From positions 62,001 through 126,000 of the forward strand of contig JAXLNO010002112.1 of assembly GCA_038087875.1 (NCBI GenBank): 64,000 nucleotides of DNA, in the 5' to 3' direction. A program made the translations under genes and the position numbers. This stretch comes from Malacoraja senta (Eukaryota). A model generated the notes under the pieces. The model saw only the letters and a list, made by a program, of their open reading frames with translations, had not been told where the DNA came from and did not search any database. Shown here one piece after another: positions 8,908 to 36,069 of the stretch (position 1 is the stretch's first letter; each line of letters opens with the position of its first letter).

Positions 8908-8973
8908 TTTTTGGATGAAAAACACAAACCATACCATTAAGAGTAACTGCCGTAGGGAATTTATTGGACCAAG
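8908..8973 (+). CDS. Candidate 66-nt in-frame cassette or alternative exon (FWMKNTNHTIKSNCRREFIGP)
   Basis: tcttcag| acceptor (weak pyrimidine tract) and consensus AAG|GTAAGT donor at 8974. Symmetric phase 2-2, no stop, internal ATG at 8915. Confidence 0.3.
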
Positions 8974-9382
8974 GTAAGTGAGATTTGTAGGTGTTGGAAA
9001 TTGGTGGGTTGACATCTGATAATTAACTATGTACAGTGCGGTGGAAAAAAACGAATGTGGTACTTTTGAAGAGCAGAGAGCTTTTCAGATGTAAATGATA
9101 TTTTGCAACTGCGAAATCTGGAGTTATAATCAGATATAAAAAATATCTATTCATTTTTAACCAAAATTTTTTAACTAATTGGCTCAATTAGTGAGGTTTG
9201 GAAAGAGATTCAAAGATTCAATTTTAAATGAATTAGTGTTTGAAAGGAATTCTTTTTTGTGCTGTTAAGTTGTTTCATTTCACTAATTGTGGCTTTTATT
9301 CCATGGAATATTGCGAAAAGTCACATATTTAGATCTTTGATTTAAGAAAATAAACTGACCTTAATTAAAAAGAGCAGCCTCC

Positions 9383-10891: not shown

Positions 10892-11244
10892 ATTCAAAAT
10901 GCAAACAGATGAAACCCCCAAGTTCCAATCTTCCCTCAAAGACAATTGTGACAACTGCACAGTTAAGAGGTTTTCGCAAAGTACAATACCTCAGTCCCTT
11001 CATTTATGGCCTCATCAAAAGCAGTTGCTGTTTCAAAATGTCTCGCCTGCATTGGAAGCTGCTCCCAGGCTTCTCATGCCTGAGGATCATACACTAAAGA
11101 AAAGGAGGAGAGTGTTTTCTAGCCCAGAGGTAGCAAGAGAATTTGCACTTCACCTGCTGTATTTTGCAGTTTTTGCTGTAGGTGTACTGGGTTTACTTCA
11201 CTGGCATGGCATGATACAGCTATTCCAAGGAAAAAGTTGCAAAG
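10892..11244 (+). CDS. CEMIP2-like: CEMIP2-like exon: cytoplasmic tail + type II transmembrane helix
   Basis: Acceptor ttttcag|A, donor AAAG|gtaagc, open frame. KKRRR basic cluster (11097-11111) precedes hydrophobic FALHLLYFAVFAVGVLGLLHW (11142-11204). Ends in phase 1. Confidence 0.75.
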
Positions 11245-14200
11245 GTAAGCTAGACAGCATTAAAACTACTAAAATAGAAGGGAATATAGATACGGTATGG
11301 AAAGATGGTGAACATAAGTAGTGAGAGGTGCCATGAAACCAAAAGGAAAGAATAAAAGTAAATAGTACAATAGACTCAGATCTGTGAGAAATTTCAAACT
11401 TGACAGAAGATAAAAAGGATAACAGGTTCATTACACACAGATGGATGGGAAATTACAAAGAAAATAGAGCAGCAGCAGAACATGACAGTAGAAAATGACA
11501 GTAAATTTGGCATCCCAGGAAACTAATAAAACAAAATCAAAGACTGGAATCAACTAAGTTCAAGTGAGATAGCAGATGGTACAGGAAAAATAATGGCACT
11601 TAATGACTTACAAATCCACAGTTCTTGGGGGGAAAAAAGCTGTAGTATTCCATATTGTCTTGGTTCAGGAATTAGCTCTTATGATTGGAAAACAACAAAC
11701 ATTTACTTAAAGAAAAATCTGATTGTTTTAACATAATGGATTGTGCAGGATCATGTTAAAATATGTAATAATGCATAACATTGAGGGATCTGGTTCAGGG
11801 TAGGTCCAGCTGGACTGATTGGATTTTCTTTTGGGAAGGGGGGAATTAATGTAGAAGATTGTATTGTTTATGGATACAGTTTATACACTTGAAGGCTTTC
11901 AATAAGGTTCAATATGATAAACTTTGGAATAATAAAAACCCACAGACTGAGGTGAAGCTATTGACCTCAGTGGAAATTTAGTTAGAAAGTAAAAGGCAGA
12001 AATTATTAATAATTGATATGTACAAGTATTTTGAAAAAACCTTTGGTGTCCCTTAAGTTTCTGTGCTGGTGAAATAAATGTGTATCAATGAATTAGATTA
12101 TGCAACAGAGACCATGTAGGGACAATCTTTTGTATTGCTGCACAATGTTTAATGATGTTCCTTTGAACAATTTGAAATGTTTTAATGCATTACGATATAA
12201 TACAAATACAAGTTGCTGCTGTTATGAATATTTCTTGTAAATCTGTCCTGCACAATTTCCCAGGATATTGCCACTGCTCCAAGTTATATTATAAAGTCAA
12301 ATTATATAAACTAGCCTTGTATTTCCTGTACAGTCAAAGATTAATGGGTGATTTGAACCAGATTTGAAGGATTTGGAAAGGAATTGTTAAGGAGGACAAA
12401 GCAAATCCTTTTCTGCTAGTCGGGAGTTCAAGGATGAAGGAATATTAGTTTTAACTAGAAGGCAGGCCGCTTGGGAAGTAGTTCTTCATATTGCAAGTAA
12501 TAGAAGGGTGGAGTATTTGCCCACAAAACATTATCTCTATTAATAATTTTAAATCTGAGGTTTCTAATTCCAGCTCAGGATATTGACTGATATAAAATCA
12601 AGACAAGTAGATGGAGTTAGGGCACCGATCCTACATAATCTCATAAAACGTTGCAGAATGTCTTATCCCATTTTTAAAAATATATATATTTAAATAGTCT
12701 ATTCCACGTTTTTAGGAGGAAATTCCATCTCAGTGGGCTCCAGAAAAAAACATGCATTATCCATCTATAAAATTAAATTGTTTTCTTCCTGCTATTATAT
12801 GTAAGACTGCACTATTGATTTAATTTCCATCTACTACAGGTGGCAACCTGGCACCAGTTGTCTTAACCTGAAGAGAACTCTAAACTGGAAAATCACTGAC
12901 CTCTAGAAAGCCAGAAGCACCTGAATGCCTTCAAGCTGTGGGAATTATTAGGTGCTCTTATTGTGTCTTCCAGATGTTGATAGAGACATGCAAACCCAAC
13001 TTGTAAAAGCAGTTTGTTTTGTTGCTTTGTATTGGGCACAGGCCAAAGGGCGTACTACAACAGCTGGGAGCACATTGTGTGCTCAGTGTAAAGTTTTAGT
13101 CGCTGTCTCCGTTGGAGAGTCACCCACCCTAATTAATAGCAACGCATGAAAAGGCAACATTTCAGCAAATAAACTGCTGCATCATTATTTATCTTCAAGC
13201 TATTTGCATGGGGTTAGTTAGTTAGTATACTGATTAGCAGGTTGCTTATGCAGCTGCCTATATGCAAAACAGCTGAAACGAAAATCGAAAACTAATATTC
13301 CAAATGTGATAACAAAACCCTTGATTATAACGCAGAGTACACCAACTTCCTGTTGCCTCTTCAACATGATTTCAAATTCCAGTGGAAACAAAAACAAGAA
13401 TGAATATTAGTAGCAACATAAAATCGGCCTACATTGTACAAAGCAAGAGAGGTGTTTTTTAATTGAGGCAGGTGGTAGATATGTAGGAAGTGAATTTGAG
13501 CTAAGAACATTGAAGAATTATATAACATGGCAGGGTATTGCATGGATGTTCCACTGGAGATCTTGACAGAAGAGATGGAAAGTAGACTTGCCATTATATC
13601 CTCAGGGAATTAAGGAGGTCCATGCTTGAAGTTCGTGTGCTCAAGAGTTTGTGTGTGGTGTTGGAAGAAGCTCCTTGGTTTCACGCCCTGTAAGTGCTCC
13701 TTCTGGTACATTTTCTTACCACGAGCACCATCTGCCTCAGATGCCACTCAGTGCATACGTCCGATCACTCAGCTCCCAACAACCTACATTAATCAGGACT
13801 TGAATGTTGGATTGCATCTTCATGCTTAGAGGATAGCAGAAAAATAAAAATGACATATGATGGGACATTAAGCAACCATCGCTTAAGTCAGGCCAAGAGG
13901 AAAGAGAAAAACTTAAGGGAGAGGTTCAACACCGTTCTGTTGCAAAGAGCAACAGGTTCTGTTGCAAAGAGCTCATCTGAAGCAATCTAAGGAAGATGCA
14001 CAATGAATGCATAGTTAGCAAGCATGCTCGAGATCTCCAAAATGGAGTGTACAACTAGCTATATTGCAGAGTCTAACCTCTGTTGATTTAGACTTTATTG
14101 CAACACAGATAGCAGCCATAAAGGAATAAAGAATAGCACCAATAGGAATAACAAAGTCATACAGAAGGGAGGCCATATCATTCCTCCAAGCCTGTCCAGC

Positions 14201-17109
14201 ATTCACTTAGATCAAGTATTAGTTGCACAAACCAACTTTTGCCACCTCAGCCTTTAGGCCCTCATATCTTAAAATATAGGCCTGTGCATTCTAATTCTAA
14301 AGCTGTAAAGACAAACCCACTAATTGATATTTCTTTCCTGTCCGTGTTATTTTTATGATCTAATAAAATGAGATCACTATAGTTCTCATAGTTCTTTCAC
14401 CATAGTTCTTTAGATATGTAAGACGCCACTAGAACACTTTCCTCCTGAGGATAGTGGATTGGCCCTTATCCTATTTGTGTTCTTGATACTTACTAACTTT
14501 TCACCATTTTTGAGGTACTCTATTCTACTTAGGTACAAAAACATGCGCCTTGTCAAGATTGCAATCCATTTGTTGCCATTTTTCTCGTTTCCTTAATCTA
14601 TTAATATCAATTTAATTCATTGCTTCTACCTAAACCGCCCTTAATGGCGTGTATTGCGGTGGCGTAGGTATTTTCCGATGCAACATACATTTTGTGACAT
14701 CTGAAAATTTATGGAGATGTGGCTTTCCACTCCTTCATCCATGTATCAACAGATTTTGGGAGTAGTTGTGGTTCCAACGTAGATCCCTGTTGGATCTACT
14801 TACATTCTGCCATTTGGATCCCATGTCCTGATGACAGTATGCCATCCTCGTTGTAATAAATGTTGATGTAACATTTTCATGATTTTTTTTTAATTTTTTA
14901 TATGTTTTCAAGGAATCCTGCTTTGCTTCTGACTTTTCCTAATGTTATAAAAAATATTGATGTTCTTCTTTTTTCAAGCTTTTACTGTTCCGTGGCCATT
15001 TATTGTTCTTGCAATCTATCCTAGTTGACAGGTTCTGGGTGTTGGTTCTTGTATTGAAAGATACATTTTCTTTTAATGTCATGTTTAGCTCTTAGTCATA
15101 GACTACAAATTAGTTGCCAACTGAAACTCTTTCCTCCTGAGGAAACTACACTGGCACTTATCCCATTAAATTCCTTTATGAATACTTCATACTGGTCTTT
15201 GTCTTTTTTTCCCATTACAACTTATTGCAAACCGTCAATGTGTCAGTATTGAAGTGGGCTTGTCTAAGTCTAGAATACTTCATGGCTGTTTTTTCCATTT
15301 TTATTTTAATTACTATATTGATCTTGAATATACAACTACTTTTAAATAAATATCCATGCACTTTCAGGCTGTTAATGAAATCTGATATATAGCTCATTAC
15401 TAATATATCCAGCTATGTTGTCAGCTGTAGGAATGTTTTTGTTGCTGACCACTATCATGATAATTCTTGAGAAATTTACTTCCTTCCTGATAGGGTTTAA
15501 CTGCATCTGTATGGAAGTTGAAATCCTACTGCTAATGAATTACTCCACCCTTGTTACACATTTATCTAATCTTAGAATTTGAGTTTTACGTCTTCAAATG
15601 CTACCAAAACAATACACAGTTCCCATCAGCATTTAAAATTATTTTCTATTTCATAATTCTACTTGTAAGGCTTCCAACTTACCACGGTAACTAGCTTTCC
15701 AATTAATTAGTAATTTTATCATTGACCTCACAATCTCCTCTTCTGGGAATTAGATTTTATTTTGTGCGTCCACCTCTCAAAATCCTGCACCATTTTTCTT
15801 TCAGGCATTCTAAAAAGGAAACCCGCAAATACTTGCATGTTCTCAATGTCTCAACTCACACTGAACTGCACATAGGACTGTCATTGCCAAATGACTCAAA
15901 ATGAGCCTCATCTCCATTGACAAGCATGCATGCATAATTGTCGGTACATTTTTGTGTAATGCTCAGAAAACACTCATTCAAGGCCAATTGAAGTTCTTGT
16001 ATTCAAATCTCATTTAAATATATGTTAATAAATAATTTATGTTTAATGGTTATTAATTTTCACTTCACAGTTGCAGCCTCACAGTCCATTTCTCAAACTT
16101 GCTCTGCAAGTTAGATCTTTACCCTTGCTCCAAATCATAGACTATGTATATTGACAAGTACACTTTGTGAAACATTTTCTCAATGCACTGACCTGCCTCT
16201 CTCTCCAAGTCTACCACCATCAACATCCTAGGGGGTCACCATTGATTAGAAAATCTGCTGGGCCAGGCACCCAAGTACTGTGGCTACAAGAAAAGGCCAA
16301 ATGCTGGGTTGGTTTTGGCACCCTAATGCTTTCCACCATCTTATTCTTTCCACCATAAACAAAGCGCGTCTGAAGCATAATAAAATGCTCTCCAATTGCC
16401 CGGATGAGTGATGTTCTAGCGATACTTGAGATGCTGTCCAGGACAAAGCAGGTCACTTGACTGGTGCTTATCAACCAACCTAACTATTTATTCTCTCCAC
16501 CACTTCCAAACATTTTTGTAGTGTTGTGGCCCTCGAATGCATTGCAGGTGCGTGCCTGGATTATTTCAACAGAGCCTTCCAAACCTATGAACTCTACCAT
16601 CAAGAAGGACAAAGCCAATAGCCATGTCACACACAATTCACTCAGTATTACTCTTGCCTGTCTCGTGCTGCTGTAAGAATGAAAAGTAGTGCAGCTTCAA
16701 ATTTCTACAAATGCTTTGTAACATTGTCTACCTAAGATAATCCTAATAATTAAGATGAATTCTGGGGCGACTGCCTCTTGGTGTTTAAACACAAACTACA
16801 TCTTAACTTGTTCCTGTATCCAATGATTTCCTCAATGTAATTTTTTTAAATTCTGATTTTGGGGACTGGGCACTGTTGGCAAAGCCATCATTTATTGTCC
16901 TTCCTTGATTGCTCATTGAGGTGGTGATGAACCACCATCAACTTAGTGGTTTGCTGGGCTGTTTCAAGTGGCATTTAAGAGTCAACCACAAGCAGTGATT
17001 GAAGTCATATATTGCCCAGATCAGCTAATCCTGGCACATTTCATCTCCTGAAGGACGTTTATGAAACTATAGGTTGTTATGACGTCAATAATTCTTATCA
17101 ATGTTGAGG

Positions 17110-17810
17110 GGGGTTATTGGAGGGGATTTGGAGAGACAGGATCTATCTGCATTTGGAAAAGCAAGGACAAATTAGGGATAGTCAACATGGCTTTGCACAT
17201 GGGAACTTGTGTCTCATGAATTTGATTGAGGTTTTGAGGGAGGTTACCAAGAAAATTGACAAGGGTGGAGCTGTAGACGTTGACTACATGGACATTAGCA
17301 GGGTTTTTTACAATGCCCTGTATGGTAGGCCAGACTGGAAGGTGAGAACTCATGGGATCCAGGAATGAGTCGGTACATTGCATACAAAATTAGCTTGGGG
17401 GAAGGAGTCGGATGGTGACAGTGGTGGATTGTTTTTCAGATTGAAAAGGCTTGTGACCAATGGTGTGCCACAGGAACGGTGCTGCATCCCCTGTTTTGTC
17501 ATATACATTAACAATATAAATGCCTTGATGGTAACTTTGCGAATGGCACCAAGATTGGTGGTGCGATGGACACTGAGAAAATTGTCTAAGATTATAACGG
17601 ATCTAGATCAACTGGGAAAGTGTGTAAAGGAATGGCAGATGGAAATTAACTCAAATTAGTGTGAATTAATGCATTTTGGTAAGTAAAGCAAAACGGGAGT
17701 AAAAAACAGGGCCTTGGGGAGAGTCGTAAAACAGAGAGACCTAGATGCACAGATACATAGTTGCCTGAAAGTGAGAACAAGATAGATAAGGTGGTGAAAA
17801 GGGCAATAAT
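17110..17810 (+). mobile_element. CR1 LINE RT fragment
   Basis: SQHGF..G.LCLMNLIE...AVDVDYMD and VTNGVPQ motifs, frameshifted. Confidence 0.85.
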
Positions 17811-18910
17811 GCCTTTATCTGTTTAATGGTTTACATGGAAGCAAAATTCTTAAATTCTCATATTTCTTTGTTACAAAAAAGGGGAAAATGTGATTCAAAA
17901 GTGAAACAAAAGGCTTCCATTTTATAGCATCTTCACCACCTGGGATGTCCTAAATGACGTATCTAACAAGATACTTTTTGAAGGTCTGTCATAATTTTGA
18001 TGAAGGAACGCAATGGCCTCTGTAACTCTACACCAGCACGATGGACACCTGATCTCCTTAAGGCAACCAAGGATGGTCAAATATATTATCTTGTCAAAAA
18101 TGTAAAATGCTAATAACAAATTAAGTTCTCTTGTCTGAACACTTCATAATGGGCAAAAGCAGTGGTGAGGGTGGGTGTACCCAATCCCACTCCTTCAGGG
18201 ACTGGCTTGTGGTGGATAACAAATCTTCCTTAAATCTCTCTAAAGTTCCCAACTTTTACTTCAGGTAATGTATAAGTCTGCCAAGGGTAAACGTTTCTTA
18301 CTAATCTAATCTATGCTCCTCAGCTTTGTTTCTCAATCAGATCTCTTCTCAGTCTTCTTCATACTGAGGCAAACATTCCCAGCCTTTCCAGTCTCTCCTG
18401 TTAGCTGAAACACTCCACCTCAGCCACATACTGGCAAAAATCCTTTTTCACCCTCGCTAGTGTAATCGCAACCTTTCCATAGTTGTGCCAGCCAAAACTG
18501 CATAAAGTATTCCAGCTGGGGTCCAACTAATGTACTGTCAATCTGATAAAATTATTAATCCAGGACCCCAACTACTTTCTCGAGTGAACATGAAATGTTC
18601 TATAGTATCATTTTGAAAGTGAAATAAAAAAATTCCTCAGTGTCCATGTCAATATTCATGTCTCGGTAAATTCGTAAATCAGATTATGTGCAAATTATGG
18701 TGGTGCTTATATACATCAAAACAAAATACTGAGCTGTGACTTTGTGTTTTGGGACATCTTGATACTGACAAAGGTGTGATCATAAATTCTGTCTTCATTG
18801 CATTTTAGAATATATAATAATAATAAACAGACGAGTATAAGTATTCATTAAGAGTTACAACCCATGTAATTTTTTTTTTTTAATCTGAATATTTAATTTC
18901 TGTTCTTCAG

Positions 18911-19396
18911 ATGGTGATCAACAAATTCAAAGCACTCATTGGAAGTTGTCATACTTCACAACCAACTCATCTGACATATACCCACTGCACAAACGATTTG
19001 TACGGAGCACAATACCAAAGAAAGACAAACAGGAGAAAAGTTTGCTGACTATCTACCAGAGAATGACAGAAGTAAAAGAAATACTACTGCAATGCGAATC
19101 TCTTGTTAAAGTGACCAATTATGTTCTGAGAGAAGCTTTGGGGAAAACTTTGGAGTTCTACCCACTTCCAACCTGTGATCAGAGGCTGAATAATCAGATT
19201 ACCAAAGTTGATCCACTCATTCTTGTTAGGGTTAAGATAAAACCACAGTTACTTTACCAAGTCTTACACTTCCTGAAAGAGCTAGACTGGCTGGTGGATG
19301 CTCATCTAGCAAAAGCGTTCTACACTGTGAAAAAGCTAATGGTTTTTAAGCAAGAAATGATATTGGGAAAGACAAGTAAAACCAATAATGAACATG
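18911..19396 (+). CDS. CEMIP2-like: CEMIP2-like exon: 162-aa extracellular stalk with furin-like KRFVR/S site
   Basis: tgttcttcag|AT acceptor, CATG|gtatgt donor. 486 nt, stop-free, symmetric phase 1-1, so it links the TM exon (phase 1) to the G8 exon (phase 1). Confidence 0.68.
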
Positions 19397-20473
19397 GTAT
19401 GTATTTGTTTATATCTTCTCCTTCCATTTAGATTTGTTGAGATTCTAAATTTAAAAAACATATGTGGAATTTTTGGATAAATATGAATCCAAGGAGGAAC
19501 ATTACATATTTATTGTGTGGAAAACTTCCGATATGTAGGAAGCCATCTGTCAATGATGGTAGACCCTAATTATGAAATTCACCATTGCCATCACCACACA
19601 CGTGCAACCTTTGGTTATCTGAGGGAAAGGATGTTTGAAGATCAGACCCTTTTACAAAACTCATAGTTTCCCAGGCATTTACCAGCATTAATCCTGCTCT
19701 TCCTTATGTTTCTGAGTCTTTGATTACCTACAACAGTCACATAAAAACACTAAAAGGACACCATCAACACTGTCTCTGCAAACTCCTCCAGATTCACCAG
19801 AAAGGTAAGTGAGTCAATGTTAGCACCCTCTCCCATGTCAACATTCCCAGTGTTGATGCCCTTGTTACTCAGTTTGCTCCAATTGAGCAGATCCTGTCAT
19901 TTGCACGCCCAGCATCAGCCTTTTGCAATGGACACCCTTTTCCGAGTACTGTCACAGAGAGAGATTACCATCTTGATTGGGGAGAAAGATTCCACGATGT
20001 TCTCAAAACCTGGAAAAGATAAAATTATCGCATTGACTTCAGGGAATCACTGGCCCATGCTCTTCTCCAAGTAGAGTAAATGCTTTCATTTGGAACTGAG
20101 AATCTAGAGTCAATTGTTCAGAACCACATAGAGCCCAATGTCAAAACCAGAAGAAATACATTACTTCAGAAATTCTCCTCCTGCCCAATCCAAAGACACC
20201 AAGTATTGCACCATATCTGTTTGAGTATGTTTCATACTGTCCTCAGCAATTTGACCTTCAGAACCTGCAGAATTGGAGTAGCAACAAGTCATCCTTGCCA
20301 TGAGAGATAAGGGATATATCATTATAAGGCTGATCCCAAAGAGAAACAAATATGAAGCAAAATACTATAATGACAGCTACACAATGTAATTCGATAAATT
20401 AATCATTAAGAACGCAGAAATATAATGAACTATCCTCTCTAGTTTTGTGGACACTTAACCACCTGTAGATTGT

Positions 20474-21869
20474 GTAGGAAAGAACTGCAGATGCTGGTTT
20501 AAATCGAAGGTAGACACAGAATGCTAGAGTAACTCAGCGGGTCAGGCAGCATCTCTGGAGAGAAGGAATGGGTGATGTTTTGGGTCGAGACCCTTCTTCA
20601 GACTGATGTCAGGGGAGTGGGCGGGACAGAGATAGAATGTAGTCGGAGACAGGACTGGTGGGAGAACTAGGAAGGGGGAGGGGATGGAGACAGATGGAAC
20701 GCAAGGGCATTTGAAGTTAAATAAGTCAATGTTCATACCGCTGGGGTGTAAGCTACCCAAGCAAAATATGAGGTGCTGTTCCTCCAATTTGTGCTGGGCC
20801 TCACTCTGACAATGGAGGAGACCCAGAGCAGAAAGGTCAGATTGGGAATGGGAGGGGGAGTTAAAGTACTGAGCAACAGGGAGATCAGGTAGGTTGAGGC
20901 GGACCGAGCGGCGGTGTTCAGCGAAACGATCGCCGAGCCTGCGCTTGGTCTCACCAATATACTGATGTTGATACCTGGAACAGCGGATGCAGTAGATGAG
21001 GTTGGAAGAGGTGCAGATGAACCTCTGCCTCACCTGAGCAGACTGTCGGCGCCCTTGGATGGAGTCGAGGGTGGAGGCAAAGGGACAGGTGTTGCATCTC
21101 CTGCAGTTGCAGGGGAAAGTACCTGGGGAGGGGGTGGGAAGGGACGAGTTGACCAGGGAGTTGCGGAGGGAACGGTCTCTGCGGAAAGCGGAAAGGGGTG
21201 GAGATGGGAAGATGTGGCCAGTAGTGGGACCATGTTGGAGGTGGCGAAAGTGTTGGAGGACATCTCCAATGATCTAGTATGGAAAACCCTAAAGAATGAG
21301 GAAATCTCTGATGATCTAGTATGGGAAACATCGGAGATGTCCTAATTCTTTAGGAAACGCAGGTTCCCCACCCATTATAGATGAGGCTCTCACTAGGGCC
21401 TCCTCGATATCCCACAGCTCCGCTCTTGCTCCCCCCGCCCACATTCGCAACAAGGACAGAGCGCCCCTTGTCCTCACCTTCCACCCCATCAGCCGTCGCA
21501 TACAGCACATAATCCTCCAACACTTTCACCATCTCCAACGGGATCCCACTATTGGCCACATCTTCCCATCTCCATTGTCAGAGGTCCAGCGCATATTGGA
21601 GGAACATCACCTCATATTTCGCTTGGGTCGCTTACACCCCAGCGGTATGAACATTGACTTCTAACTTCAAATATCCCTTGCTTTGCCTCCCTCTCCATCC
21701 TCTCCCCATCCCATTTCTCCCACCAGTCTTACTGTCTCCGACTACATTCTATCTCTGTCCAGCCCACTGACCTGACAGTCTGAAGAAGGGTCTCAACCCG
21801 AAACATCACCCATTCCTTCTCTCCAGAGATGCTGCCTGACCCGCTGAGTAACTCCAGCATTTTGTGTCT
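20474..21869. mobile_element. Penelope-like retroelement (GIY-YIG endonuclease end) in inverted configuration
   Basis: Minus ORF 20542-21033 NLIYCIRCSR...YIGETKRRLGDRFAEH is a GIY-YIG endonuclease. An inverted partial copy lies at 21340-21869, with hammerhead motifs at both ends. 16-bp TSD ACCACCTGTAGATTGT at 20458-20473 and 21870-21885. Confidence 0.9.
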
Positions 21870-22924
21870 ACCACCTGTAGATTGTCAGGTTTGTGAGGAT
21901 AGTTCATTACATTTCCACGCTCTAAAGGATTAATTTATCAAATTACATTGCATTTATGGTTTGTACAAAAACTGAAGTCTCAGACATACTGACAGATATT
22001 TGCTGACATTTTGTCCACTGGATACTTCAGTGCGAAGATGTCACTAGTCACAAGCATTTCAGTTCAGGAATATGCCTTAACAGCCTGTCTCAGAATGGAC
22101 TGGCATGAAAACTATCTCCATTTATTTCAATGCAGTGGATCTGCTCCAAAATGTCACGGTAACTCTGAAGTTACTGTATAATTCTTTTGAATTCTTTGAA
22201 TATATTTATAACATTGCATTTATTTTATTTTTAAGTAAAATATTTGTTTTATTTTTTAAACATACACAGCTGGGGATGGATAGCTTACCCAAAGGATATG
22301 TTTTTCCAGCAGTATGTAGCTGGGACCTATTCTGGCCCCACCACATAACAAGATATATATTGAAGCATTCCCATGTAGCAGAAGGCCTCATCCATTACTT
22401 GAAAGATTTTGTGCCACAATTCCTACTTTTGTAAACCATGCAAAGATAATGTGGTTTGCTGCAGATGACAAATTTGTTGCTTTTGAGTACTTTTAATTAT
22501 GAAATAGGAATATGATCCCAGAGGTGGCTTTTCCAATTATCCAATACTTTGAATTCCGCTGAGGATTGAGAATGACTTGCTTCCACTCTTCTGTGTGTTC
22601 TGAGATGATGATGAGACTAATGATGGGAATCACAGACTCCAATACAGGAGGGCGGTGGTGCTTGATGCGAATGTAAGTAGTTTGGGATGTGGTTCACTGC
22701 TTATGCCATTTACACTGGGCTTCTGTGCACTTCCAAAGGAACATGAATATCTCAAGGCCTCCCTGATTCCCAGGAGCCAGTGGTGATGTTACAGTTTTCA
22801 AAGAGGCTTTGAGAACTCCCTAATGTTTTCCTCTGTCCACTTGATTATATTTTGCTGTGACAATACTCAGAATAGACTGTCAGGCACGTGAGTGATGTGC
22901 TCATTGGAGCCAAGCTAGTGTAAT

Positions 22925-23770
22925 TAGAAATAAAAACAAGATGTTGAAGATGCTCAGCGGGCCAGGCAGCATATGTGGAGAGAAGAAGAGTTAATGTTTC
23001 AGGTGAATCACTTTCCTTCAGAACTGGAATATGTGTTTTAAATTGCAGAGAAGAGGAGGGCCAGAGAGAATAAAAGGAATGTTTGTGAACGACTGGAGAC
23101 CAAGGTTGACCAACATCTGCAACATCAAAAAGAGGATAGTACAGGCTTACAAATCATAGCTAATCTTTCTGTAAGAGATGTAAGTGGAAATAAATAATAA
23201 ATGGGGACAGAGAAGAGAGGGACAAAACACTGCTGAAATTTTGAAATGTAGAACCTATCAGTTGCTGCAAAATCTTAAATAATAGAAATTCATGATTACT
23301 CAGAAGATCAGTTACCAACTACGGAGAGAAGAAAACAAACTTAATGTTAACGCTTCAGGATCTTCTATCAGAACTGGCAGGTTCTAACGCATAGAAAAGT
23401 GGCTGGTTACATTAAGTTGCATTCAATATGGGGTCCCAATGTTTGCAACATGTTAGATGAAAGATAAGGTGCTATTCCTCAAGCTTGTAATGGGCTTTGT
23501 TGGAACAAAATAGGGAGGCAAAAACACATGGGTCAAAATGGAAGAGGGATGAAAAATTAATGTTACAGGCAACTGGAAGCACACAACACTCTTGCCGATG
23601 GAACAGAGGTGCTGTCATAACTGTATTTAGTTTCTCCGCATCATGAGGACAGGACTTAGTACACCAAATTGGCAGGAGAGCAAATAATACTTTACCTGGA
23701 AGGGGTCCCAGGATGATGGAATGGGAGGTGATGCAAGGAAAGGTGATGTATCTGTTACTGTCGTGTGGAA
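22925..23770 (-). mobile_element. Older degenerate Penelope copy with tandem pLTR remnants
   Basis: pLTR-like segments at about 22925-23030 and 23260-23380; 23466-23620 resembles 20770-20910. Confidence 0.55.
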
Positions 23771-23794
23771 ATGGTTGGTTACAATAGAATCACC

Positions 23795-24185
23795 ACAGCA
23801 CAGTGGTTGGCACTGTTGCCTCAGTTTGATCCTGAGCTCAGGTGATGTCTGTAGAGTTTTCACCTTCTTCCCATGACCATGCGATTTTATGCCAGGTTGT
23901 TGGGTGTTCCCCTACATCCCAAAGACATGCTGGTTGGTAAGCTGGAGATTTGTCTGTGTGGAGTTTGCACATTCTCCCTGTGACCACGTGGGTATCCTCC
24001 AGGTGCTTCGGTTTCCATCCACATCACAAAGGTAGATTCATTGGCCACTGTAAATTTTGCTTAACGTGTCAGTGAATGTTAGAATCTGGAGGGGAGTTAA
24101 TGTGAATATGAGGGAAATAAAGTGGGTGCTTGATGGTCAGTAAGGTCTCAATAGGCTGAACACCCATTTCCATGCTTTATATGTC
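23795..24185 (+). mobile_element. HE1-like V-SINE with internally duplicated core
   Basis: The V-domain core (GGAGTTTGCAC.TTCTCCC.GTGACC) occurs twice. Confidence 0.65.
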
Positions 24186-26384
24186 CTACTCATTACAATG
24201 TTTTGCACTCACTGCCCCAGTATTGTTTCTTTCTTTTTCTCTTTGTCTTCATTTATCGCCATCTATCTGTTGTGGACCTTTATTGTAGGATGCAGCTTGA
24301 TAGAGGAGCTTTGTTCAAAATATGTTTGGTGTTAGGTCCATTCTCTCATATGTTTCAGTGAATAGGTCATCAACAACTTGGAGTGTGTCCTCAGAACATG
24401 CGCATACACTAGTGCTGACTGCACACAACAGCTCAACAGCTCAAATAAATTCAAGGAAAACAAGTCAAGTTTGCACAACCAGTTTTCAATGCTGGTATCA
24501 TTTTAGTGAATCTGCACTGTAAACTCTGCAAACCCAATATATCTCACTAGCCAAGATCAAGTGCAGTATTCTACTATCAAAATGCTTAGGTTTTGTCACA
24601 TTGTACCATTGTCTCATTGTCCCAGTCATGTCAAGGTGAATCCATCAAGGCAGTTCTACTGAGGCAATGTGTAATTCATGTATATCAGGAATCATATCAG
24701 TCTTAGGTGAGTCAAACACACAGAAAATGCCTCAGAGTAATTTAGTCAAAAAGATTTGGAAAAATCTTTTTGACCTCCGAAGGTAGTTTAATAAAACTCC
24801 ATGAGGCATATGTATTGAATTTCAACATCTACAAATCCACATACCTCTCAAACTGGAAATGTTCTTGATTCTTATGGGTTTACCTTTAAAGGGCTAAAGT
24901 GCCTGACATCTTAAGTGAAGGGCTTAACTTAAGGTCAGAGGAAAGGTCGAGAACTGAAAAGTCATCTATCTATTCCTACACGTGCTGCCTAACCCGCTGA
25001 GTCCTCCAGCATTTATTTTTTCCTTAAGTGAATCTTTGTTTAACATATATTTTAGTAGTGCATTCAAAGGATCAATATTAAAATCTAAATAAATCTTAAC
25101 CTTTTTATTTCAAAGTTACCTCCTTACAATTAATACCAAATGATCTTTCAGTCAGAAAAAAAATCGGTGCTCTTTATCATTTAAAAAATATCAAGTGGAA
25201 CTCCTCATTCTACCCTTTTCCGTTGAAAAAAAATGATTTCCGGAGTCTGATAGCTTAAGACTTTGATCATTTCTTGACCTTCTCCAAGGCCTCAATTTCT
25301 GTCGTCCATCAAAGTGAGTAAAATTGAGATACATTTCTAACATCTGCTGTGAGGATCTGAACAGCAAACTTCTGTCTTCAAGGTTTATTCCTCATATCAT
25401 GGCTTACACACAGCGACATTCATTGCATGGTCATAGCACCTCTGGGTTCATCATTGGCTAATCATACTGTCTGATAGAATGTCACCTGAAATTCTTAAAG
25501 TTAAATGTTTTAATTGTACGCATCCCATTCACTAAATCCATTTGTGTATGCTATTTTTCTAGATGATTTGTCAGAATGTCCCATGCTTTTCCATGTTATG
25601 TCTATCCATTTGCTTTGTTTTTATAGTCTTAAAATGGCTGAAAAGGAACAGGACCCACAGAAAGTCCTTTAAAGGTAGAGTTCGGCCAAGACCCTTACTT
25701 GGACCAGACTGTGTTATATGTTGTTAGTGCATGGCAACTCCAGTGTATAACGATCATTTCACTTGCTCAAACATCTTGGGTACAATCCAATTCTTCCCAT
25801 TTGTTTCGTGCTCCATTCTGTTGCACTGACAGGACTTGGCACTGAGTAGGTCAATGAGTTTCGTGATACTATTTATCCCGAATAAATAGATTTTGTTGGA
25901 CAAATCCTGAATAAATTATACACTAATCTCAAAGTATTGCCATTCTTGACAGAAAAATTGTTTTGAGTTGTGTTGGACATGATGTTTGATATATGAATAA
26001 TATAGATAGGACACGAGATGAAATTCATTCAGACTGGCACCAAGCCATAGGGTTCCTTTATTAATGAGAAAAAGGAGGACTTTTTTAAAATAATAAAATC
26101 ATCAAAAAGCACAAACAATAAATTATATTTAGTAGGTGGCCATTCATAGAGAATGACACACATAAATTTACTTTAAAAAGAGGAAATTCCACCCTATCAT
26201 AAGATAAGCTTGGGTGTACTGATGATGTTTAAAAGGTGATCGAAAGTTAGTAACATAAAATCACTTGAGGTAGAATACCTGTCATTTTAATGTGTGTTAC
26301 ATGGGCTGTTAAAAAAAGATGTCATGTTGAATCACTCTGTTAAAATCAAAAGAAAGATAGCCAACTGATTATTTAGTTTATGCA

Positions 26385-26560
26385 AAACACAAGGTGCTCG
26401 AGGAACTGAGTAGGTGAGGCAGCATCTGGGGAGGGAATGGATTGGCAGTGTTTTAGATCAAGACCCTTCAGCCAAGACCCGAAACATCACGTCTATTCCC
26501 TCCCCAGATGCTGCCTGACCCTCAGAGGTCCTCCAGCATTTTGTGTTTAGCTCAAGATTC
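26385..26560. mobile_element. Fold-back Penelope pLTR element (diverged)
   Basis: Inverted arms AACACAAGGTGCT..GGCAGCATCTGGGGAGGGAAT and ATTCCCTCCCCAGATGCTGCC..GCATTTTGTGTT. Confidence 0.7.
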
Positions 26561-26563
26561 CAT

Positions 26564-26596
<33 letters not shown>
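26564..26596 (+). repeat. (TAAG)8 microsatellite
   Basis: Read directly from the sequence. Confidence 0.95.
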
Positions 26597-26979
26597 TGAC
26601 ATTATCGACAGTTTCTTCAGTCTCCTAGTTATCCAATCTATTATTTATTTATTTCAATTAATTATATATATTGCCCCAGCAGGAGAGATAAATCATATAT
26701 TACTGTCATTTTAAACACACCCACTTTAAAAAAGTGGTGTGCTTTCAGCAACTTTCTCTCTACAGTGCTGCTTGTGCTGCCACCTAATGAACAGTCAGAG
26801 TACCTTTTCTGAAATAAATGACATCTGGTAGCTTGGCCGTTGAGATTATATTTTGCTCCACTTTCACCAGGCTTACATAAAAGCTGCCCTGAGCATAACT
26901 GTTTCTCACTTAGTATTTAGTTTATCGTCCTTGGTAAATAGAAAATTTGATGTTTCAGAAACATAAAACGCGTATAAGA

Positions 26980-27320
26980 CCATGAGAGGAATAGATAAGG
27001 TAGATGACAGTGTCTTTTACCCAGGGTGGGAGAATCAAGACCAGAGAACATAGGATTAAAGTGAGGGGGAAAACAATTTAAAAGGAACTTAAAGGGCAAC
27101 TTTTTAACACAAAATGTAGTGGATATATGGAACGAGCTTCCAAAGGAGATAGTTGAGGCAGGTACTATCATAACGTTTAGAAGATATTTGGACAGGTATA
27201 TCGATAGGATAGGTATAGAAGGATATGGGTCAAATGCAGGCAGGTGGGACTACCATAGATGGGGCATCTTGGTTGGCATGGGCAAGATAGACTAAAGGGC
27301 CTGTTTCTGTGCTCCATTAC
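26980..27320 (+). mobile_element. CR1/HER1 LINE 3' end
   Basis: Reverse-complement similarity to 9383-9780. Confidence 0.8.
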
Positions 27321-28039
27321 TTAGACTGTGCATTCATGTCTTACTTAAAACATTTCAATATATAATTTAAACCGTTAATAAATTGGCAATATTAGCAATA
27401 CCGGCCATACTGCTAAGAAATTTAAATTATTTTAAACACTGCCCTCGACATGTCCAATTCAGTGTTGGTCGGCATGGGGAAGTTAGGCTGAAGGACCTGT
27501 TTCCATGCCGTATGACTCCATGACTCTATGACTTGATAAAAAAAAAAGAAATCATTTGTCCTCTATGTTTTCAAAATAAAAAATATTTGTTATATTTCAT
27601 GAGGTCATTATACCTGCTAAAATAAGTATAGTTATTGAAAGGCAGTGGATATATCAGTGTAAAACTCACTGTTTGCAACCAAGCTGTAAAGGCTGACTGC
27701 TATTTCCAGCCCAATGGAACCAGAGTTAGATGGCAATTGGGATTCCACTTATTAAGTGAAAATTGTATATTCTCGTAATTTATGAATCCATTAATAGCCA
27801 CTTTTAACTTCGTAATGTTTACAATGATGATGAATGAACAGTTCTTTGTTTTGGTCGTGTCTTCAAACTATATTCAAAATAGATAGTTAGTCATTGCGTT
27901 ATAAAAGAGAATCAGTTCTTAATGTTAGGAGATTCCCTCACCAGAACAAGACATAACTATGTAGTGATAAACTTATTTTGCACGTGTCCTACTGTAAACA
28001 TATCAATTTCACTGGAAAGTCTATTGATATTAGCAATGA

Positions 28040-28400
28040 ATGATCTGTGGCATCTACTTACTTTTGCTCAGTCAGAATGTTGAATTCATGTCTCACTCCT
28101 GAGACCTGAGCAAATGATTAAGAGTGATGCTTCTACACATGACTAAGAAAGTACTACACAGCCGAAGATGCCACTTTTAAATGAGATGTTTAACTGGGGC
28201 TATCTGTATATCCATTGACACCAAACTGTGTCACTCCTTTTCTGTGAATTCTACTTGTACATTGTTTAATTTTACTTCAAAACCAACATCACTCAAATTT
28301 CTTGTTTTACTGTTTGTGCAAGGTTGTAGTATGCAGATCAACATAAAATGGCTGTGAAGCTATTGGGCATTCTGAATGGATGAAAGCCACATATTAAATG
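28040..28400 (+). mobile_element. Ancient DeuSINE (SacSINE1/AmnSINE1-like) remnant
   Basis: Resembles the recalled Deu-domain consensus (CACTCC.GAGAC.TGAGCA...GATGCC.CTTT...ATGAGATGTT.AAC); highly diverged. Confidence 0.45.
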
Positions 28401-30574
28401 CAAATTTGTTTTTGCTATTGTTTATGTGAGGAGTTTGAATTAATCTGAGAGACGTTTTAATTAGTCTGAATTTTTAACCTTTTACACTTTTTAAGTATTT
28501 ACTAATCAATATTGATTAGATAATGTAGCAATGAAAAATAGTAATCTAAAATGGGACATACAAGCTGATTGAAAATCATACTATGTTTTAATTTGTAAAC
28601 ATTTCCCATAACATCACATTGCTTTCTGTGAATATGTTGTGCTCAAAATATTTTCTGCCTATTCAAAAAATAGAAGATTGTGCCCCCTGGTTTCCAGAGT
28701 TACTCATTTGTTGTCATGGACAAGATGGTATCTATTTAAAGTTACTAGCAATCTCATACATTTCAAATTTAGCCAAAGAGATTAAACAATGTTCTTCACA
28801 ATCATTTTAAACCTTTACTTCTGTCTAATATTCCCACAGCTAGTGTTTCTATTTAATATTTATCATCTCCTGTGGAGCATATTTATTATCTACTACTTTA
28901 ATTTCAGTGAAAACAAGAACAAGGAATAATGCTGTTGTTTTCAATTTCAGTTTTTTTCCCCTAGCATTTGCATTTTTTTAATTTTCTACAAATATCAGGT
29001 GGTTTAAGACACATTGAAGAATTTTCATATACACGCTAAGGATATCTGTGAAGGCATAAAGTTTAGTAATTACTGCTCAGCCTGCCTGACTGTGCCAGGA
29101 TTGTGAGGAATAGCTGTCAGATTTAAAGTGTTTCTGGTAAACCACAAACTTGCTCAAAATGACTACCAAGCAGGCAGAAGGCAGCTTGCAGTTAGAAATG
29201 AGGATACTACACTGGAAAAGTAATAGAATGAAAGAACAGACTTGCATTTATAAAGCACCTTTCCCATCAGTGCTAATTGAAACACTGCTTAGCTAATAAA
29301 CAGTACGTGCCACTCAGTAGTTTAGTGGTGTAATGGTTACGTTACTGGACTAATCTATTTAAGCAATTTGAAAATGCTGTATGGAATTTGGTACTAAAAA
29401 GCTGGTTTTCTGTGAAAGTGACCACAAAACCACTGTCATAAAATCATAATTGGCTTACTAATGACTTAACCTGGTATATGAATGCAGCCCTGACTAATGC
29501 AAGCCACGGGTTGTATCAATAACAATGAACTAAAAATGTTGGCACATTCTGAAAATGAATTAAAAAAAAATACAGGTAAGAACTAATTTATACTCAAAAT
29601 GATCAATATTTCACCTTTATTCATAAAGCTAATGTTTCTATTGAACATAATAGAATATGTGGGCACATTTGTTATCTGGTTCTATAATTAGTGAAATTAA
29701 GATCACAGAGTAATCACTGGGGGAAAGAATGGCTGTTGGTTTGATTGAGAATCACAATGTGACATTAATACAACAGTGACAGCTGGAAAATCTTCATTTA
29801 TAGCAACATTTCAGCATGTTAGATGTAATAAATGTAAAAAATGATTCAGCATTTTTATCCACATCATATAATAATTATAGGGCTGTTTGTGAGCCGTGTT
29901 AAAGCCATCCGGTATTCCCGATAGAAATTCTCCACACTTCTTCCCAATTTCAGTCCTCCTCATAGAATCCCAACTTTGCACTACTCAGCTCAAGAGTCCT
30001 GTTCAACATCACATCCCAAATCTTCTGCTGTAAAAATCATCAGCCATGCCTTTTGACACCTGCAATTCAGTTTTGCTGGCCTGAGTACCACAGAATAGAA
30101 ACTCAATCCTCATCAATCAAGTTTCGCTCACCCAGCAGCTGTTCCCACCAGCTCGCTCCTTGTTTCCTTTTCTATTTCAATCAAAATCCTCATTCATGAC
30201 CAACTTCCCTTTTGAGATAAATAAAGTTCTATCGTATCGTATGGCCTTGTTCTGCCCAACTCGTTTACATTCTAGCAGACACATGCATTCATTCACTGGT
30301 TATGGGTATTGCGGCCGAGACAAATGTTTAAGGCCAGTTGGCAGGAAGTCAGGGGACCTCCTCTTGCACCTTCTATCAGGCCGAGCTGTAACAACTGTTT
30401 GTAGATCCCTTGACGAGGTGAGAAAGTGGATGTGGTGCCTGGCCCACTTCCTTGGTCTGCTGGTATGTTTCAACCTTCTGTAACTTTGATAAATTGGTAT
30501 GTGCTTAGGTTGGAGCACAATGCTGAGATATTAGTTTGACTGGAATATCCATTGATTGAAACATGAGGGCAGTA

Positions 30575-30880
30575 GAGTGAGATAGCAGGAAGTGCAACTG
30601 CCCTCACAGTTACAGCAACCTGGGATTGACCCTGACCTCTGCTGCTGTCTGCGTGGAATTTACATATACCTCTTCTGTTTCTAGTTTCACCCACATCCCA
30701 GAAACTTTCTGGTTCGTAGGTTAATTGGCCCCTGTAGATTGCCCCTGGAGTAGGTTGGTGGTAAGATATTCAGGTGATGACTCAATGAACATCTGGAAAG
30801 ATTGCAGTGAAATAAATAGGGTCTTTGGGTTATTTCGTAACATGGCATAGACTTGATAGATGAATGTCCTCCTGTGTCAT
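30575..30880 (+). mobile_element. HE1-like V-SINE (diverged)
   Basis: Core CCCACATCCC...GTAGGTTAATTGGC.CCTGTA.ATTGCCCC. Confidence 0.7.
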
Positions 30881-31889
30881 AAAGAAGGTTAGTGTATTTC
30901 TTTTTAGTGGTGATTTGAAATGAGTATGGATTGTGATGATTTTCTTTTTGCTGGTCTGGGGCAACACAGAAGCATCGTTTCAGACCTGCATGAGTGCAAA
31001 TGTACAGCACTTCTTCATCACGGCTGGCTCATTTTTCAAATAGCCCTGGTATCTCTTCCCTATCACTAGAGACCTTCTGGGATAACTTCACCCTTCCTTT
31101 CCATCTCCTACTATGCCATCGTTTACCATTTGGAATCTGAATTTTTACTACTCTTGTAAAGTTCCCTGAAATGTTTTTTTTTCTAATTTAAGTATTGTTT
31201 AGAATGTTATTGGAAAATAGGTGTCCGTTAATTGGAGAGTATTTAGATTTTAGTTTTGACTTTCAATTGGTTAATATAGATTTTGTGTGAATCGGAATGT
31301 TGTCTACAAATTCATATGCCTGTATGGATCACGATAATTCATATTGATGATATAATGCATTAGCTCTGCAATTGAGAATTAGTTAAGGATAATAAAAGGT
31401 AAATGAAAGCAATTGGAGATGTTCAAGTAAGCTGCAAGTAGAAGAAACAGCAATGAAACTTGTGATTGCTAACATTCTGTTAGAGATTTAGGAACATTGG
31501 TATAATGTGTGTTGAGTTACAGATTTATACATTGCCAAATTAAAACACGTCCTTAGTTCCAATATAAACTCTCATCAGAAGTAGACTACAATGAAGGGAA
31601 ATGTGTTGTGTTAGAAACCACCCATTCTATGATGTTTATTCTTTGTAACCCTTGTACTCCCTGGTGAGATTTGTAAATTATTTCTTGTTTCCTTTAAAAT
31701 GCTCAAGGAATAAAATGTAATCCACAATGTGTAAAGGGACCCATAAATGGAATAATGACAAATTCTAGGGCTATAGGTCAACATTCCTTCACTGAACAGT
31801 GGGTGAAACAGCAGCTGATGTGCACCATGTGCCCAGAGGTGAAATCTGTTCAATCTGTGCCAATGCATTGAGTGCCAATGAGATTCTCT

Positions 31890-32440
31890 GAGAGTGAAGA
31901 AGAGACAAAAGAAAAGGGAAGGACAAGAAAAAGAGAGTTGAGGAAGGTTTACTAGGGAAAGAAGAAGTGAGACCTCATGAACCTCATGAGGGGAGGTGAC
32001 GAAAGAAAGGGATGGGAAGCAGAGAGAGGGCAAGGCAGGGTGAGGTGAGATTGAGGGATGTAGAAATGAAAGGGAAAAGTGAAACCAGTAGGATGTGACC
32101 ACTGAAGGGAAAGGAAGAAGGGGAATGAGGAAGTGATGTGGGCTGAATAACAAAGGGGGGAGGAAAGGTAGCTAATTGGACAGGGAGTTTGATGGAGGAG
32201 TGTGAAGGACTGAGTAGGTAAGAAACGGTGTGGAGGGCAGGAAGAATTAGGACAAGAAAAGGACAAAGAGTTTGAAAAAAGAGCAATGGAAAGAGTGGGA
32301 GTGAAGGATGGGGGAAGAAAGGAGAGCTGCTAGTAAGGAGGAGTGAAGAATAGAGAATGCTCAGATTATAGGAAGAAGAGGAAGGGAGAGAAGTGAGAAT
32401 AGCTGAGAGAATAATAGAGGGAGGGAGGGTGAGGGCAAAG
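31890..32440 (+). repeat. Purine-rich (GA-rich) low-complexity tract
   Basis: About 550 bp strongly A/G-skewed on the + strand. Confidence 0.8.
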
Positions 32441-32464
32441 CATGAACATAGGTAGATCATTCAT

Positions 32465-33730
32465 CTTAGAGTTATAGAGTCATACAGTCTGGAAACAGAC
32501 CTTTCAGCTGAACTTGCCCATGGCGACCAACATACCCCGTTTAATCTAGCCCCACCTGCCTGCTTTTGGCCCTATCCCTCTAAACCCATCTTCTCGAACT
32601 TGCTTGCATTCAATAAGATCTTGGCTGATCTTTTACTTCAGCACCACTTTTGGAATATAAAACAGTACAGCACAAGAACAGGCCCCTAGGTCCACAATGT
32701 CTGTACTGAACATGATGCCAAGACCAACTCTTAGCAGCCTGCACGTAATCCATATCCCTCCATTACCTGCATATCCATGTGCCTATCCAAAAGTCTCTTA
32801 AATGCCACTATCGTATCTGCCTCAACCACCACTCCAGGAATTCACCACCGTCTTTGTAAAAAGACTTGCGCCACACATCTTCTTTAAACTTTGCCCCTCT
32901 CACCTTAAAGCTATGCCCACTAGTATTTGATTTTTCCATCCTGGGAAAAAGATTCTTATTATCTATCCTATCTGTGCCTCTCATATGTCCCCATGCAACC
33001 TCTGGCATTACCCCCTAATCCAAGGCATCATTTTGGTAAACCACCTCTCAAGAGTCAAGTCAAGAGAGTTTTATTGTCATGTGTCCCAGATAGGACAATG
33101 AAATTCTTGCTTGCTGCAGCACAACAGAATATGTAAACATAATACAGAACAGGAGATAAAAGTTCAGTGTGTCTATATACCATAGACCATATATATATAT
33201 ACAATAAATAAACAGATAAAGTGCAATAGTAATAATAGACTTATTGTTCAGAGCTTGTTTGATGTTGTGTTCAATAGCCTGATGGCTGTGGGGAAGAAGG
33301 TGTTCCTGAACCTGGATGTTCCAGATATTCACTCTTTCCAAAGCCTCCACATCCTTCCTGATCAGAACTGGATGCAATACTCCAAATGCAGCCTAATCAA
33401 CGTCCTATAAAGCTGTATTATGCCTTCCTGGCTCTTGTACTCAATGCCCTGAGCTATGAAAACAAGCATACCATATGCCTGCTTTACCACTCTATCTACT
33501 TGTGTTGCCACTTGCAGGGAGTTGTTGACTTGGACCCCATTATCCCTCTGTACTTCAATGCCATTAATTGTATATTTCCACACATCACATTTACTCTAAT
33601 TGAATTCCATCCACCACAATCCTCTGTCTTCCATCAGTAAGCCATTTCTGAACCCATATGACCAAGTCATTGTTAATCACATCCACCTTAATCTTCTGGG
33701 TCAGCCTACCATGGGGGACTTTATTCATAT
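32465..33730 (-). mobile_element. Cluster of CR1 fragments with a nested second LINE 3' end (about 33050-33325)
   Basis: CR1 ORF2 peptides (QVDRVVKQAYGML...LYRTLIRLHLEYCIQF; NLFPRME..TSGHSFKVRG). Confidence 0.75.
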
Positions 33731-35181: not shown

Positions 35182-35249
35182 TTTCAGACTAGTGTTGTGT
35201 GCTGAAATGTTAATTGTCTTTTGTAAATTATTCTTATTGGAGGCAAGTA

Positions 35250-36060: not shown

Positions 36061-36069
36061 GTTGAGCTG

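Follow-up and report, generated by a model that had tools for sequence, protein, structure and literature searches.

A conserved stalk exon between the membrane anchor and the G8 domain of a skate CEMIP2-like gene encodes a linker and a predicted helical module

Results

The window analyzed here is a 64,000-nt stretch of the Malacoraja senta genome (contig JAXLNO010002112.1, positions 62,001 to 126,000). It carries a gene that, judged by its sequence, is the skate orthologue of "cell surface hyaluronidase-like / CEMIP2-like", a paralogue within the CEMIP family. Between the transmembrane exon and the first G8/beta-helix exon of this gene lies a coding exon, here called the stalk exon (Table 1). 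An earlier note on this DNA, made from the sequence alone, had described the exon as novel. It is a real, expressed, ordinary constitutive coding exon, and it can already be found in the RefSeq models for Amblyraja, Leucoraja and many further vertebrates.

The frame from 18913 to 19395 is free of stops over 161 codons, and one extra base at each end gives the symmetric phase 1-1. The borders are AG/GT, with a long pyrimidine tract followed by cag/AT at the acceptor and CATG/gtatgt at the donor. Computed splicing of 10899-11244, 18911-19396 and 36865-37005 produced a single open frame, which reads in order Met, a basic tail, a hydrophobic transmembrane segment, a 162-residue insert and then DCPDKAPYLLPWNPG. 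Translation and inspection of the borders confirmed the 486-nt stop-free exon with good splice sites that had been described earlier, and the NSS sequon, the HKRFVRS motif and the two cysteines were found where they had been claimed to be (Table 1). The open stretch around the exon spans 18889-19428 (540 nt) and ranks ninth by length among those of the window, the longer ones lying in G+C-rich or transposon-derived DNA. When the 2-kb AT-rich block that holds it was shuffled 2000 times, one shuffle contained a stretch of that length, and shuffling gave an expectation of 0.28 stretches this long per shuffled window.

Table 1. Features of the CEMIP2-like gene and of its upstream neighbour (positions in the window)
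Feature	Positions	Strand	Remarks
Last coding (C-terminal) exon of an ABHD17-type hydrolase, upstream neighbour	3141-3362	+	from translation
Alternative 5' coding exon (MKNTNHTIKSNCRREFIGPR)	8915-8974	+	tblastn; residues 1-20 of Amblyraja isoform X2, 100% identical; GT donor at 8975
Transmembrane exon	10892-11244	+	ATG at 10899; cytoplasmic tail and type II anchor (residues 82-100, nt 11142-11198)
Stalk exon	18911-19396	+	486 nt, phase 1-1; encodes juxtamembrane linker and helical domain
N-glycosylation sequon NSS	18964-18972	+	6 of 11 aligned cartilaginous-fish sequences have a sequon here
Basic motif HKRFVR/S	18988-19008	+	P5 Lys, P4 Arg, P1 Arg, P1' Ser; candidate proprotein-convertase site
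Conserved helical domain (predicted)	19036-19380	+	exon residues ~42-156; Cys61 (19093-19095), Cys88 (19174-19176)
Cassette exon	25627-25674	+	48 nt, phase 1-1; encodes VLKWLKRNRTHRKSFK; tttatag/ acceptor, AAAG/gtag donor
First G8/beta-helix exon (VDCPDKAPYLLPWNPG...)	36865-37005	+	joined to 19396 in transcript contigs X1 and X3
Ten further coding exons	37281-61433	+	tblastn; reach residue ~995 of ~1583; gene continues beyond the window

RNA-type runs of related organisms were found by two index searches, and four of them were aligned onto 17900-20400. All words shared with these runs fell within the exon, and the share rose from 0.19 to 0.37 once the flanks were dropped. For another relative, represented by DNA runs, the matching fraction of the sampled words was about 0.37 within the exon as compared to about 0.11 in the flanks. 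Three contigs from related skates (X1, 3314 nt; X3, 1084 nt; X4, 1811 nt) aligned to the exon with ~97-98% identity. They covered 18909/18922-19396 only, with no coverage of the nearest intron sequence to the left or right of it. The substitutions of run X1 match Leucoraja erinacea, and one relative carries an in-frame 3-nt deletion in the exon.

The unaligned letters of these contigs located the junctions. On the 5' side they read ...GATACAGCTATTCCAAGGAAAAAGTTGCAA, the last bases of the transmembrane exon, and the junction 11244 to 18911 was thus seen in transcript contigs of three related species. On the 3' side, the unaligned ends of contigs X1 and X3 read TGGATTGCCCAGATAAGGCC... and TGGATTGCCCAGATAAGG..., both of which are the sequence from 36865 onward; the junction 19396 to 36865 was thus seen in two related skates. 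Contig X4 runs from 19396 into TCTTAAAATGGCTGAAAAGG..., which has a unique placement at 25627. The stalk exon is therefore spliced to both of its neighbours, and the link between 19396 and 36865, on which the earlier note had made its reading depend, is present. The statement that the exon exactly bridges the transmembrane and G8 exons holds for one isoform, in which the joining is direct, and not for another, in which the cassette exon lies between. The skipped junction (11244 to 36865), which had been proposed to give a non-shed form, appeared in none of the three transcript contigs, and no isoform with the transmembrane segment and without the stalk exon was present among 12 RefSeq isoforms of Amblyraja, Leucoraja and Rhinoraja. 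These 12 isoforms vary in the N-terminal exon, the cassette or the C-terminus, or start downstream of the transmembrane segment.

The exon peptide was compared by phmmer with 1.84 billion representative proteins. Nine matches were obtained (E = 1e-11 to 8e-4), all to residues ~36-152. Two were full-length CEMIP-type proteins in which the matching segment lies directly before G8. The remaining ones, truncated predictions in turtles and passerines among them, were short models that run past this same exon end into the intron, which indicates that the exon border is conserved. The matches were named "cell surface hyaluronidase CEMIP2-like" and "transmembrane protein 2-like", and the fragments "uncharacterized protein LOC...". 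When the axolotl stalk region was the query of a word-indexed homology search, only two salamander proteins came back, and this search was set aside as too insensitive.

A full-length search placed orthologues, among its best 120 matches, in birds, crocodilians, turtles, squamates, frogs, salamanders, coelacanth, gar, sturgeon, bichir and eel, as well as in ten cartilaginous fishes. The stalk exon peptide is 92.5% identical to residues 136-294 of Amblyraja radiata XP_032906156.1 and 52-79% identical to nine other cartilaginous fishes. Its identity to sturgeon, gar, coelacanth, amphibians, turtles, alligator and birds is 24-42%, and the matching segment always lies directly before G8. The open frame is thus conserved in related species, as the earlier reading demanded, in frame and at the same position across jawed vertebrates. 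Comparison with three near relatives gave 3-6 synonymous codon changes at 103 synonymous sites, and 5-8 non-synonymous ones at 380 non-synonymous sites. The resulting ratio of non-synonymous to synonymous rates (omega) is ~0.2-0.6, from few substitutions. The recognizable similarity from chimaera to bird is, on these alignments, a stronger sign of purifying selection than omega. Derived residues of the window species are K36, Y83, W126, T138 and F145; four related transcripts agree with each other at these sites.

The rest of the gene was laid out by tblastn of the Amblyraja isoform X2 protein (P0127) against the window. The transmembrane exon is 91% identical to Amblyraja. Its anchor, FALHLLYFAVFAVGVLGLL, has a Kyte-Doolittle 19-residue score of 2.31, with six Lys/Arg in the 15 residues before it and two after. 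The hydropathy peak and the charge distribution (positive-inside rule) place the N-terminus inside the cell, and by hydropathy the protein has a single N-terminal signal-anchor with a cytoplasmic N-terminus, as does TMEM2. This topology comes from the hydropathy calculation only, without a dedicated topology predictor. Skate RefSeq models give at least three alternative N-termini. Downstream, the window exons from 36865 on align to the Amblyraja protein, and exon 37281-37840 aligns to the human TMEM2 structure 8C6I (E = 1.4e-57). The body has G8 at the start of a right-handed beta-helix and an inserted GG-1 (ILEI/FAM3-like) lectin domain; the C-terminal beta-sandwich and GG-2 are seen in the Amblyraja orthologue. 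Orthologues carry PF10162, PF15711, PF24606 and PF24605.

The cassette exon had been missed by the earlier note. Its peptide is 100% identical to residues 295-310 of Amblyraja X2 (tblastn). It is included in the X4 transcript and skipped in the transcripts of two species, and the RefSeq isoforms differ likewise. The cassette is very basic, contains an NRT sequon and RTHR (R-x-x-R), sits between the helical module and G8, and is conserved in rays, sawshark and cow shark. In the intron directly upstream, 25563-25626 (+), a frame that is open from its ATG continues as MICQNVPCFSMLCLSICFVFI into the cassette and matches the N-terminus of Hypanus sabinus isoform X2 (MNMMICPNASCFSMLCLSICFVFTVLKW...). 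This segment may serve as another first exon that encodes a hydrophobic leader, or just be a conserved splicing-regulatory region.

Residues ~42-156 of the stalk exon form the predicted helical segment. An AlphaFold2 (AF2) model built from a 35-sequence alignment had a mean predicted local distance difference test score (pLDDT) of 70.5 and a predicted template modelling score (pTM) of 0.61. Mean pLDDT in 10-residue blocks was ~74-93 over residues 41-150, and helices were predicted at residues 44-53, 61-76, 101-105, 111-123 and 129-156. In the alignment, C61, C88, P101, K110 and L121 are invariant, and the motifs LLKLS, CDQ, NPLKL and KPxLLxxVLxFL are nearly so. Cys61 and Cys88 probably form one disulfide. 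The skate protein has the module of the stalk-bearing clade, with CxxL..KLS, CDQ, NPLKL and KPxLLxxVLxFL, directly N-terminal to G8.

The earlier note had not recognized the helical segment as a known domain, and our searches agree with this. Three exon peptides and 35 aligned stalk sequences gave nothing consistent against Pfam (seven different families, each matching a single sequence of the set, best E = 0.038). A stalk profile searched against PDB sequences gave a best E of 5.4. Foldseek gave a best E of 2.7 against PDB (TM-score <0.25) and of 0.6 against AFDB clusters (TM-score <0.33). The wide VIA-align search reached a best Z of 5.4, which is under the stated noise level for helical models, and the best score of the ESM Atlas feature search, 0.81, is at chance level.

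N-terminal to the module, the exon encodes a linker of ~40-45 residues that is predicted to be disordered (AF2 pLDDT <50 over residues 1-40). RFVR corresponds to protein residues 144-147, 47 residues beyond the anchor; the G8 Cys is residue 280. Across 20 cartilaginous-fish species the pattern is Y-P-L-[HY]-[KR]-R-x-[AV]-R-[SN], constantly 29 residues before Cys61. Both P4 Arg and P1 Arg are kept in 18 of the 20, including chimaera, and variants include HRAARS in Mustelus and YSLYRRFARS in Hemitrygon. The linker around the motif is otherwise variable. R-x-x-R is also kept in sturgeon (RREARR), coelacanth (RRPGRS), Pelodytes (KRSTRQ) and Bombina (KRSRRN). The motif thus looks like an island of conservation in an exposed extracellular disordered linker and resembles a convertase site. 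The window reads R-F-V-R rather than the canonical R-x-[K/R]-R, and what the skate protein offers is a minimal R-x-x-R that is extracellular, exposed by its low pLDDT and conserved. The conservation of R-x-x-R in related species, on which the earlier note had made its reading depend, was borne out by its fixed position in 18 of 20 cartilaginous fishes. In tetrapod and ray-finned orthologues, leaders are followed by signal-peptidase-like sequences (by inspection), for example CWQRCAA/GN and GAQA/TS in tetrapods. These orthologues could be released by this other route.

Discussion

The best explanation of these data, to which we give a probability of about 0.85, is that the stalk exon is a constitutive exon of a CEMIP2-like orthologue and supplies a linker and an orphan helical module in a type II membrane protein. 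The ~105-residue module, which is conserved from chimaera to birds, would fold independently and be specific to this paralogue. The exon would supply a flexible extracellular linker with an N-glycan sequon and a motif, [KR]-R-x-x-R-[SN], conserved in most but not all of the species compared. The module would be tethered to the G8/beta-helix body by a short, predicted-flexible linker, which the optional and very basic 16-residue insert could lengthen. We infer that the module may hold the catalytic-type body off the membrane, mediate interaction or regulation, or both. If the candidate convertase site is used, the released ectodomain would keep its helical module.

Several observations weigh against parts of this reading. 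An AF2 prediction in context, with the module and the first 455 residues of the body (42 sequences), was poor (pTM 0.35), and the truncated beta-helix was badly predicted. In this model the 15-residue connector had pLDDT <50, the module gained no confidence, and the prediction was silent on packing against the beta-helix. The function given to the module is wholly inferred. Convertase cleavage at RFVR/S is a candidate derived from a motif. P1 Arg is replaced by Gln in Chiloscyllium punctatum (KRSAQS) and by Trp in C. plagiosum (KRSAWS), and gar (RRETEQ) and sauropsids (SLLRSN) lack the motif. In cartilaginous fishes the P2 residue is Val, Ala or Gly and never basic, a minimal furin pattern only. 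The omega estimates are based on small numbers of substitutions, and the assignment as a third paralogue rests on identity and neighbours, not on a tree with a bona fide skate CEMIP2.

The strongest alternative involves no protease, and we rate it as a serious contender that falls somewhat short of even odds. The stalk would be permanent, the module would mediate oligomerization or the binding of a partner or glycosaminoglycan, and YPL-Y-K/R-R would be an interaction surface or sorting signal. The most invariant part of the motif, Y-P-L-x-[KRH]-R, persists even where P1 Arg is lost, and the long C-terminal amphipathic helix predicted at 129-156 and the very basic optional insert LKWLKRNRTHRKSFK are the kind of elements that could bind a polyanion or another protein. 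The tetrapod signal-peptidase-like sites after the leader would also permit release there without need of a convertase. However, binding and oligomerization are purely proposed, and the module matches no known interaction domain. Moreover, two Arg at fixed spacing across cartilaginous fishes, whose evolution spans roughly 400 million years by estimate, are more specific than a general basic patch requires.

Working convertase cleavage at RFVR/S, taken by itself, is plausible on the sequence, with about one chance in three. The earlier note had gone further and proposed that furin-type cleavage at RFVR sheds the hyaluronidase in soluble form, while regulated exon skipping gives a permanently anchored form; this full model appears improbable. 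R-x-x-R is fixed in 18 of 20 cartilaginous fishes, in a predicted-disordered linker 47 residues past the anchor, and phase 1-1 would preserve the frame upon skipping. Against this, no skipped form was found in the three transcript contigs or the 12 skate RefSeq isoforms, P2 is non-basic and the motif is lost in Chiloscyllium.

The enzymatic part of this model is also in question. His248 and Ala303 of mouse TMEM2 were reported to be indispensable for hyaluronan degradation, and human TMEM2, with Asn and Phe at the same positions, to be weak or inactive (PMC12423501). In exon 37281-37840, the window encodes Tyr (TLYPGG) and Arg (FLRRQ) at the columns of N248 and F303 of human TMEM2, whose numbering was taken from the construct in PMC10206443. 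The two GG-1 positions thus differ from His and Ala; the rule was derived for TMEM2 only and serves as a caveat, not as a verdict on activity. The bird orthologue has His and Leu at these positions. The catalytic activity of TMEM2 is itself disputed (PMC10206443 vs. PMC10474455). Because of the Tyr and Arg and of this dispute, the description of a shed product as a "soluble hyaluronidase" is unproven. Literature searches on TMEM2 shedding or cleavage returned gene-list mentions and papers on TMEM2 structure and activity only.

A chance open frame, or an exon of a different or unused gene in the first long intron, would fit an exon standing alone in a 25-kb interval with transposon-derived open frames, but both were rejected as having next to no probability, because transcripts splice the exon to both flanking exons, the frame is conserved in Amblyraja and across jawed vertebrates, and 1 in 2000 local shuffles was as long.

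Among the closest known proteins, the RefSeq CEMIP2-like predictions of Amblyraja radiata (XP_032906156.1), Leucoraja erinacea (XP_055517167.1) and Callorhinchus milii (XP_007905360.1) are orthologues, and further ones of this type are found in Ambystoma (XP_069480268.1) and Podargus (KAM6301555.1). All share the order of cytoplasmic tail, transmembrane segment or leader, linker, helical module, optional cassette, G8, beta-helix and GG domains. Nothing essential is different in the window species, which has a few derived substitutions. XP_053897283.1 (Malaclemys), XP_050165695.1 (Myiozetetes), XP_027742843.1 (Empidonax) and OCT89719.1 (Xenopus laevis) consist of a leader, the stalk exon and intron read-through. 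These four short "uncharacterized" models are probably mis-split 5' ends of the CEMIP2-like gene.

TMEM2/CEMIP2 (8C6I) resembles the skate protein in having a type II anchor followed by G8/beta-helix, GG-1, beta-helix and GG-2. The structure aligns to the Amblyraja protein over residues 312-1578 only (1629 bits), and residue 312 lies at G8, corresponding to about human residue 112. The homology thus starts a few residues past the human anchor, and the claim that human TMEM2 has no counterpart of the stalk stands. The TMEM2 ectodomain construct spans 106-1383, with the beta-helix beginning at the N-terminus of the ectodomain (PMC10206443). In human TMEM2 the beta-helix is at most ~10 residues from the membrane, whereas the skate protein has 179 residues between the anchor and the G8 Cys, and so its beta-helix does not directly follow the anchor.

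CEMIP (HYBID, KIAA1199) has the same body architecture and is apparently the adjacent gene in sharks. It is secreted, with a cleavable signal peptide followed directly by G8 (the shark model begins MMMMHLLYNIGWLLALNLPALFAACPDQ...) and without the stalk module. Its secreted state is the one that a shedding model would reach. Type II proteins shed by furin-type convertases include ectodysplasin-A, BAFF/APRIL and the transmembrane collagens XIII, XXIII and XXV. Like the skate protein, they have an N-in anchor, a flexible juxtamembrane stalk with a basic R-x-x-R-type site and a distal functional ectodomain. Their sites are mostly R-x-[KR]-R and experimentally proven, whereas the skate stalk has the minimal motif only, known from sequence.

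The skate protein is 46-48% identical to shark CEMIP as compared to 63% to bird CEMIP2-like. CEMIP and CEMIP2-like RefSeq accessions are consecutive in Scyliorhinus, Mustelus, Heterodontus and Carcharodon (models P0172, P0118 and P0177), and GCB69077.1 is a fused shark prediction of 2814 residues that spans both. The two genes are apparently tandem neighbours in sharks. The ABHD17 exon of the window, upstream on the same strand, appears to resemble ABHD17C rather than A or B. ABHD17C is the neighbour of human CEMIP, and ABHD17B that of human TMEM2. The identities and neighbours point to a third family member between CEMIP and a probable ABHD17C. This putative third paralogue was not found in mammalian entries among the matches listed. 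Literature searches for it or its stalk gave gene-list mentions only, and its proteins are computer predictions throughout.

Reviews of hyaluronan turnover count two proteins, the secreted CEMIP/HYBID and the anchored TMEM2 (PMC12423501). A third paralogue, widespread among jawed vertebrates other than mammals, would join a TMEM2-like anchor, a module of unknown fold, a candidate shedding site and a spliced basic insert. It could show the origin of the anchored and secreted modes and the N-terminal elements that regulate the family. One might imagine that in cartilaginous fishes an anchored TMEM2-like protein is switched post-translationally to a CEMIP-like soluble form at the convertase site, that the module travels along as a regulatory or targeting (pro-)domain, and that the basic cassette (KRNRTHRK) adds a second processing or glycosaminoglycan-binding site. 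We regard this scheme as unlikely; if true, it would make the paralogue a natural intermediate between the anchored and secreted modes of the family. What the present analysis adds is a pointer to a domain and a paralogue that are as yet unstudied, rather than a new gene structure. For annotation, it matters that database entries from several birds, turtles and Xenopus present the stalk exon as an "uncharacterized protein" of its own.

Two minor observations concern other parts of the window. A short exon at ~36750-36776 (+), ending ...FVHCTLVYTT/gt, lies just 5' of the G8 exon within the G+C-rich, G-skewed region of 34-38 kb. It corresponds in sequence to exon 1 of Amblyraja isoform X6 (MMSRSPFVHRTLVYTT-VDCPHK), which is without the transmembrane segment and without a signal peptide. 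The 25-kb interval between the transmembrane and G8 exons also holds transposon-derived open frames, and at 20542-21033 (-) an intronic open frame of 163 residues contains a GIY-YIG-type motif (CIRCSRYQHQYIGETKRRLGDRFAEHRRSV). It is probably a remnant of a Penelope-like retroelement.

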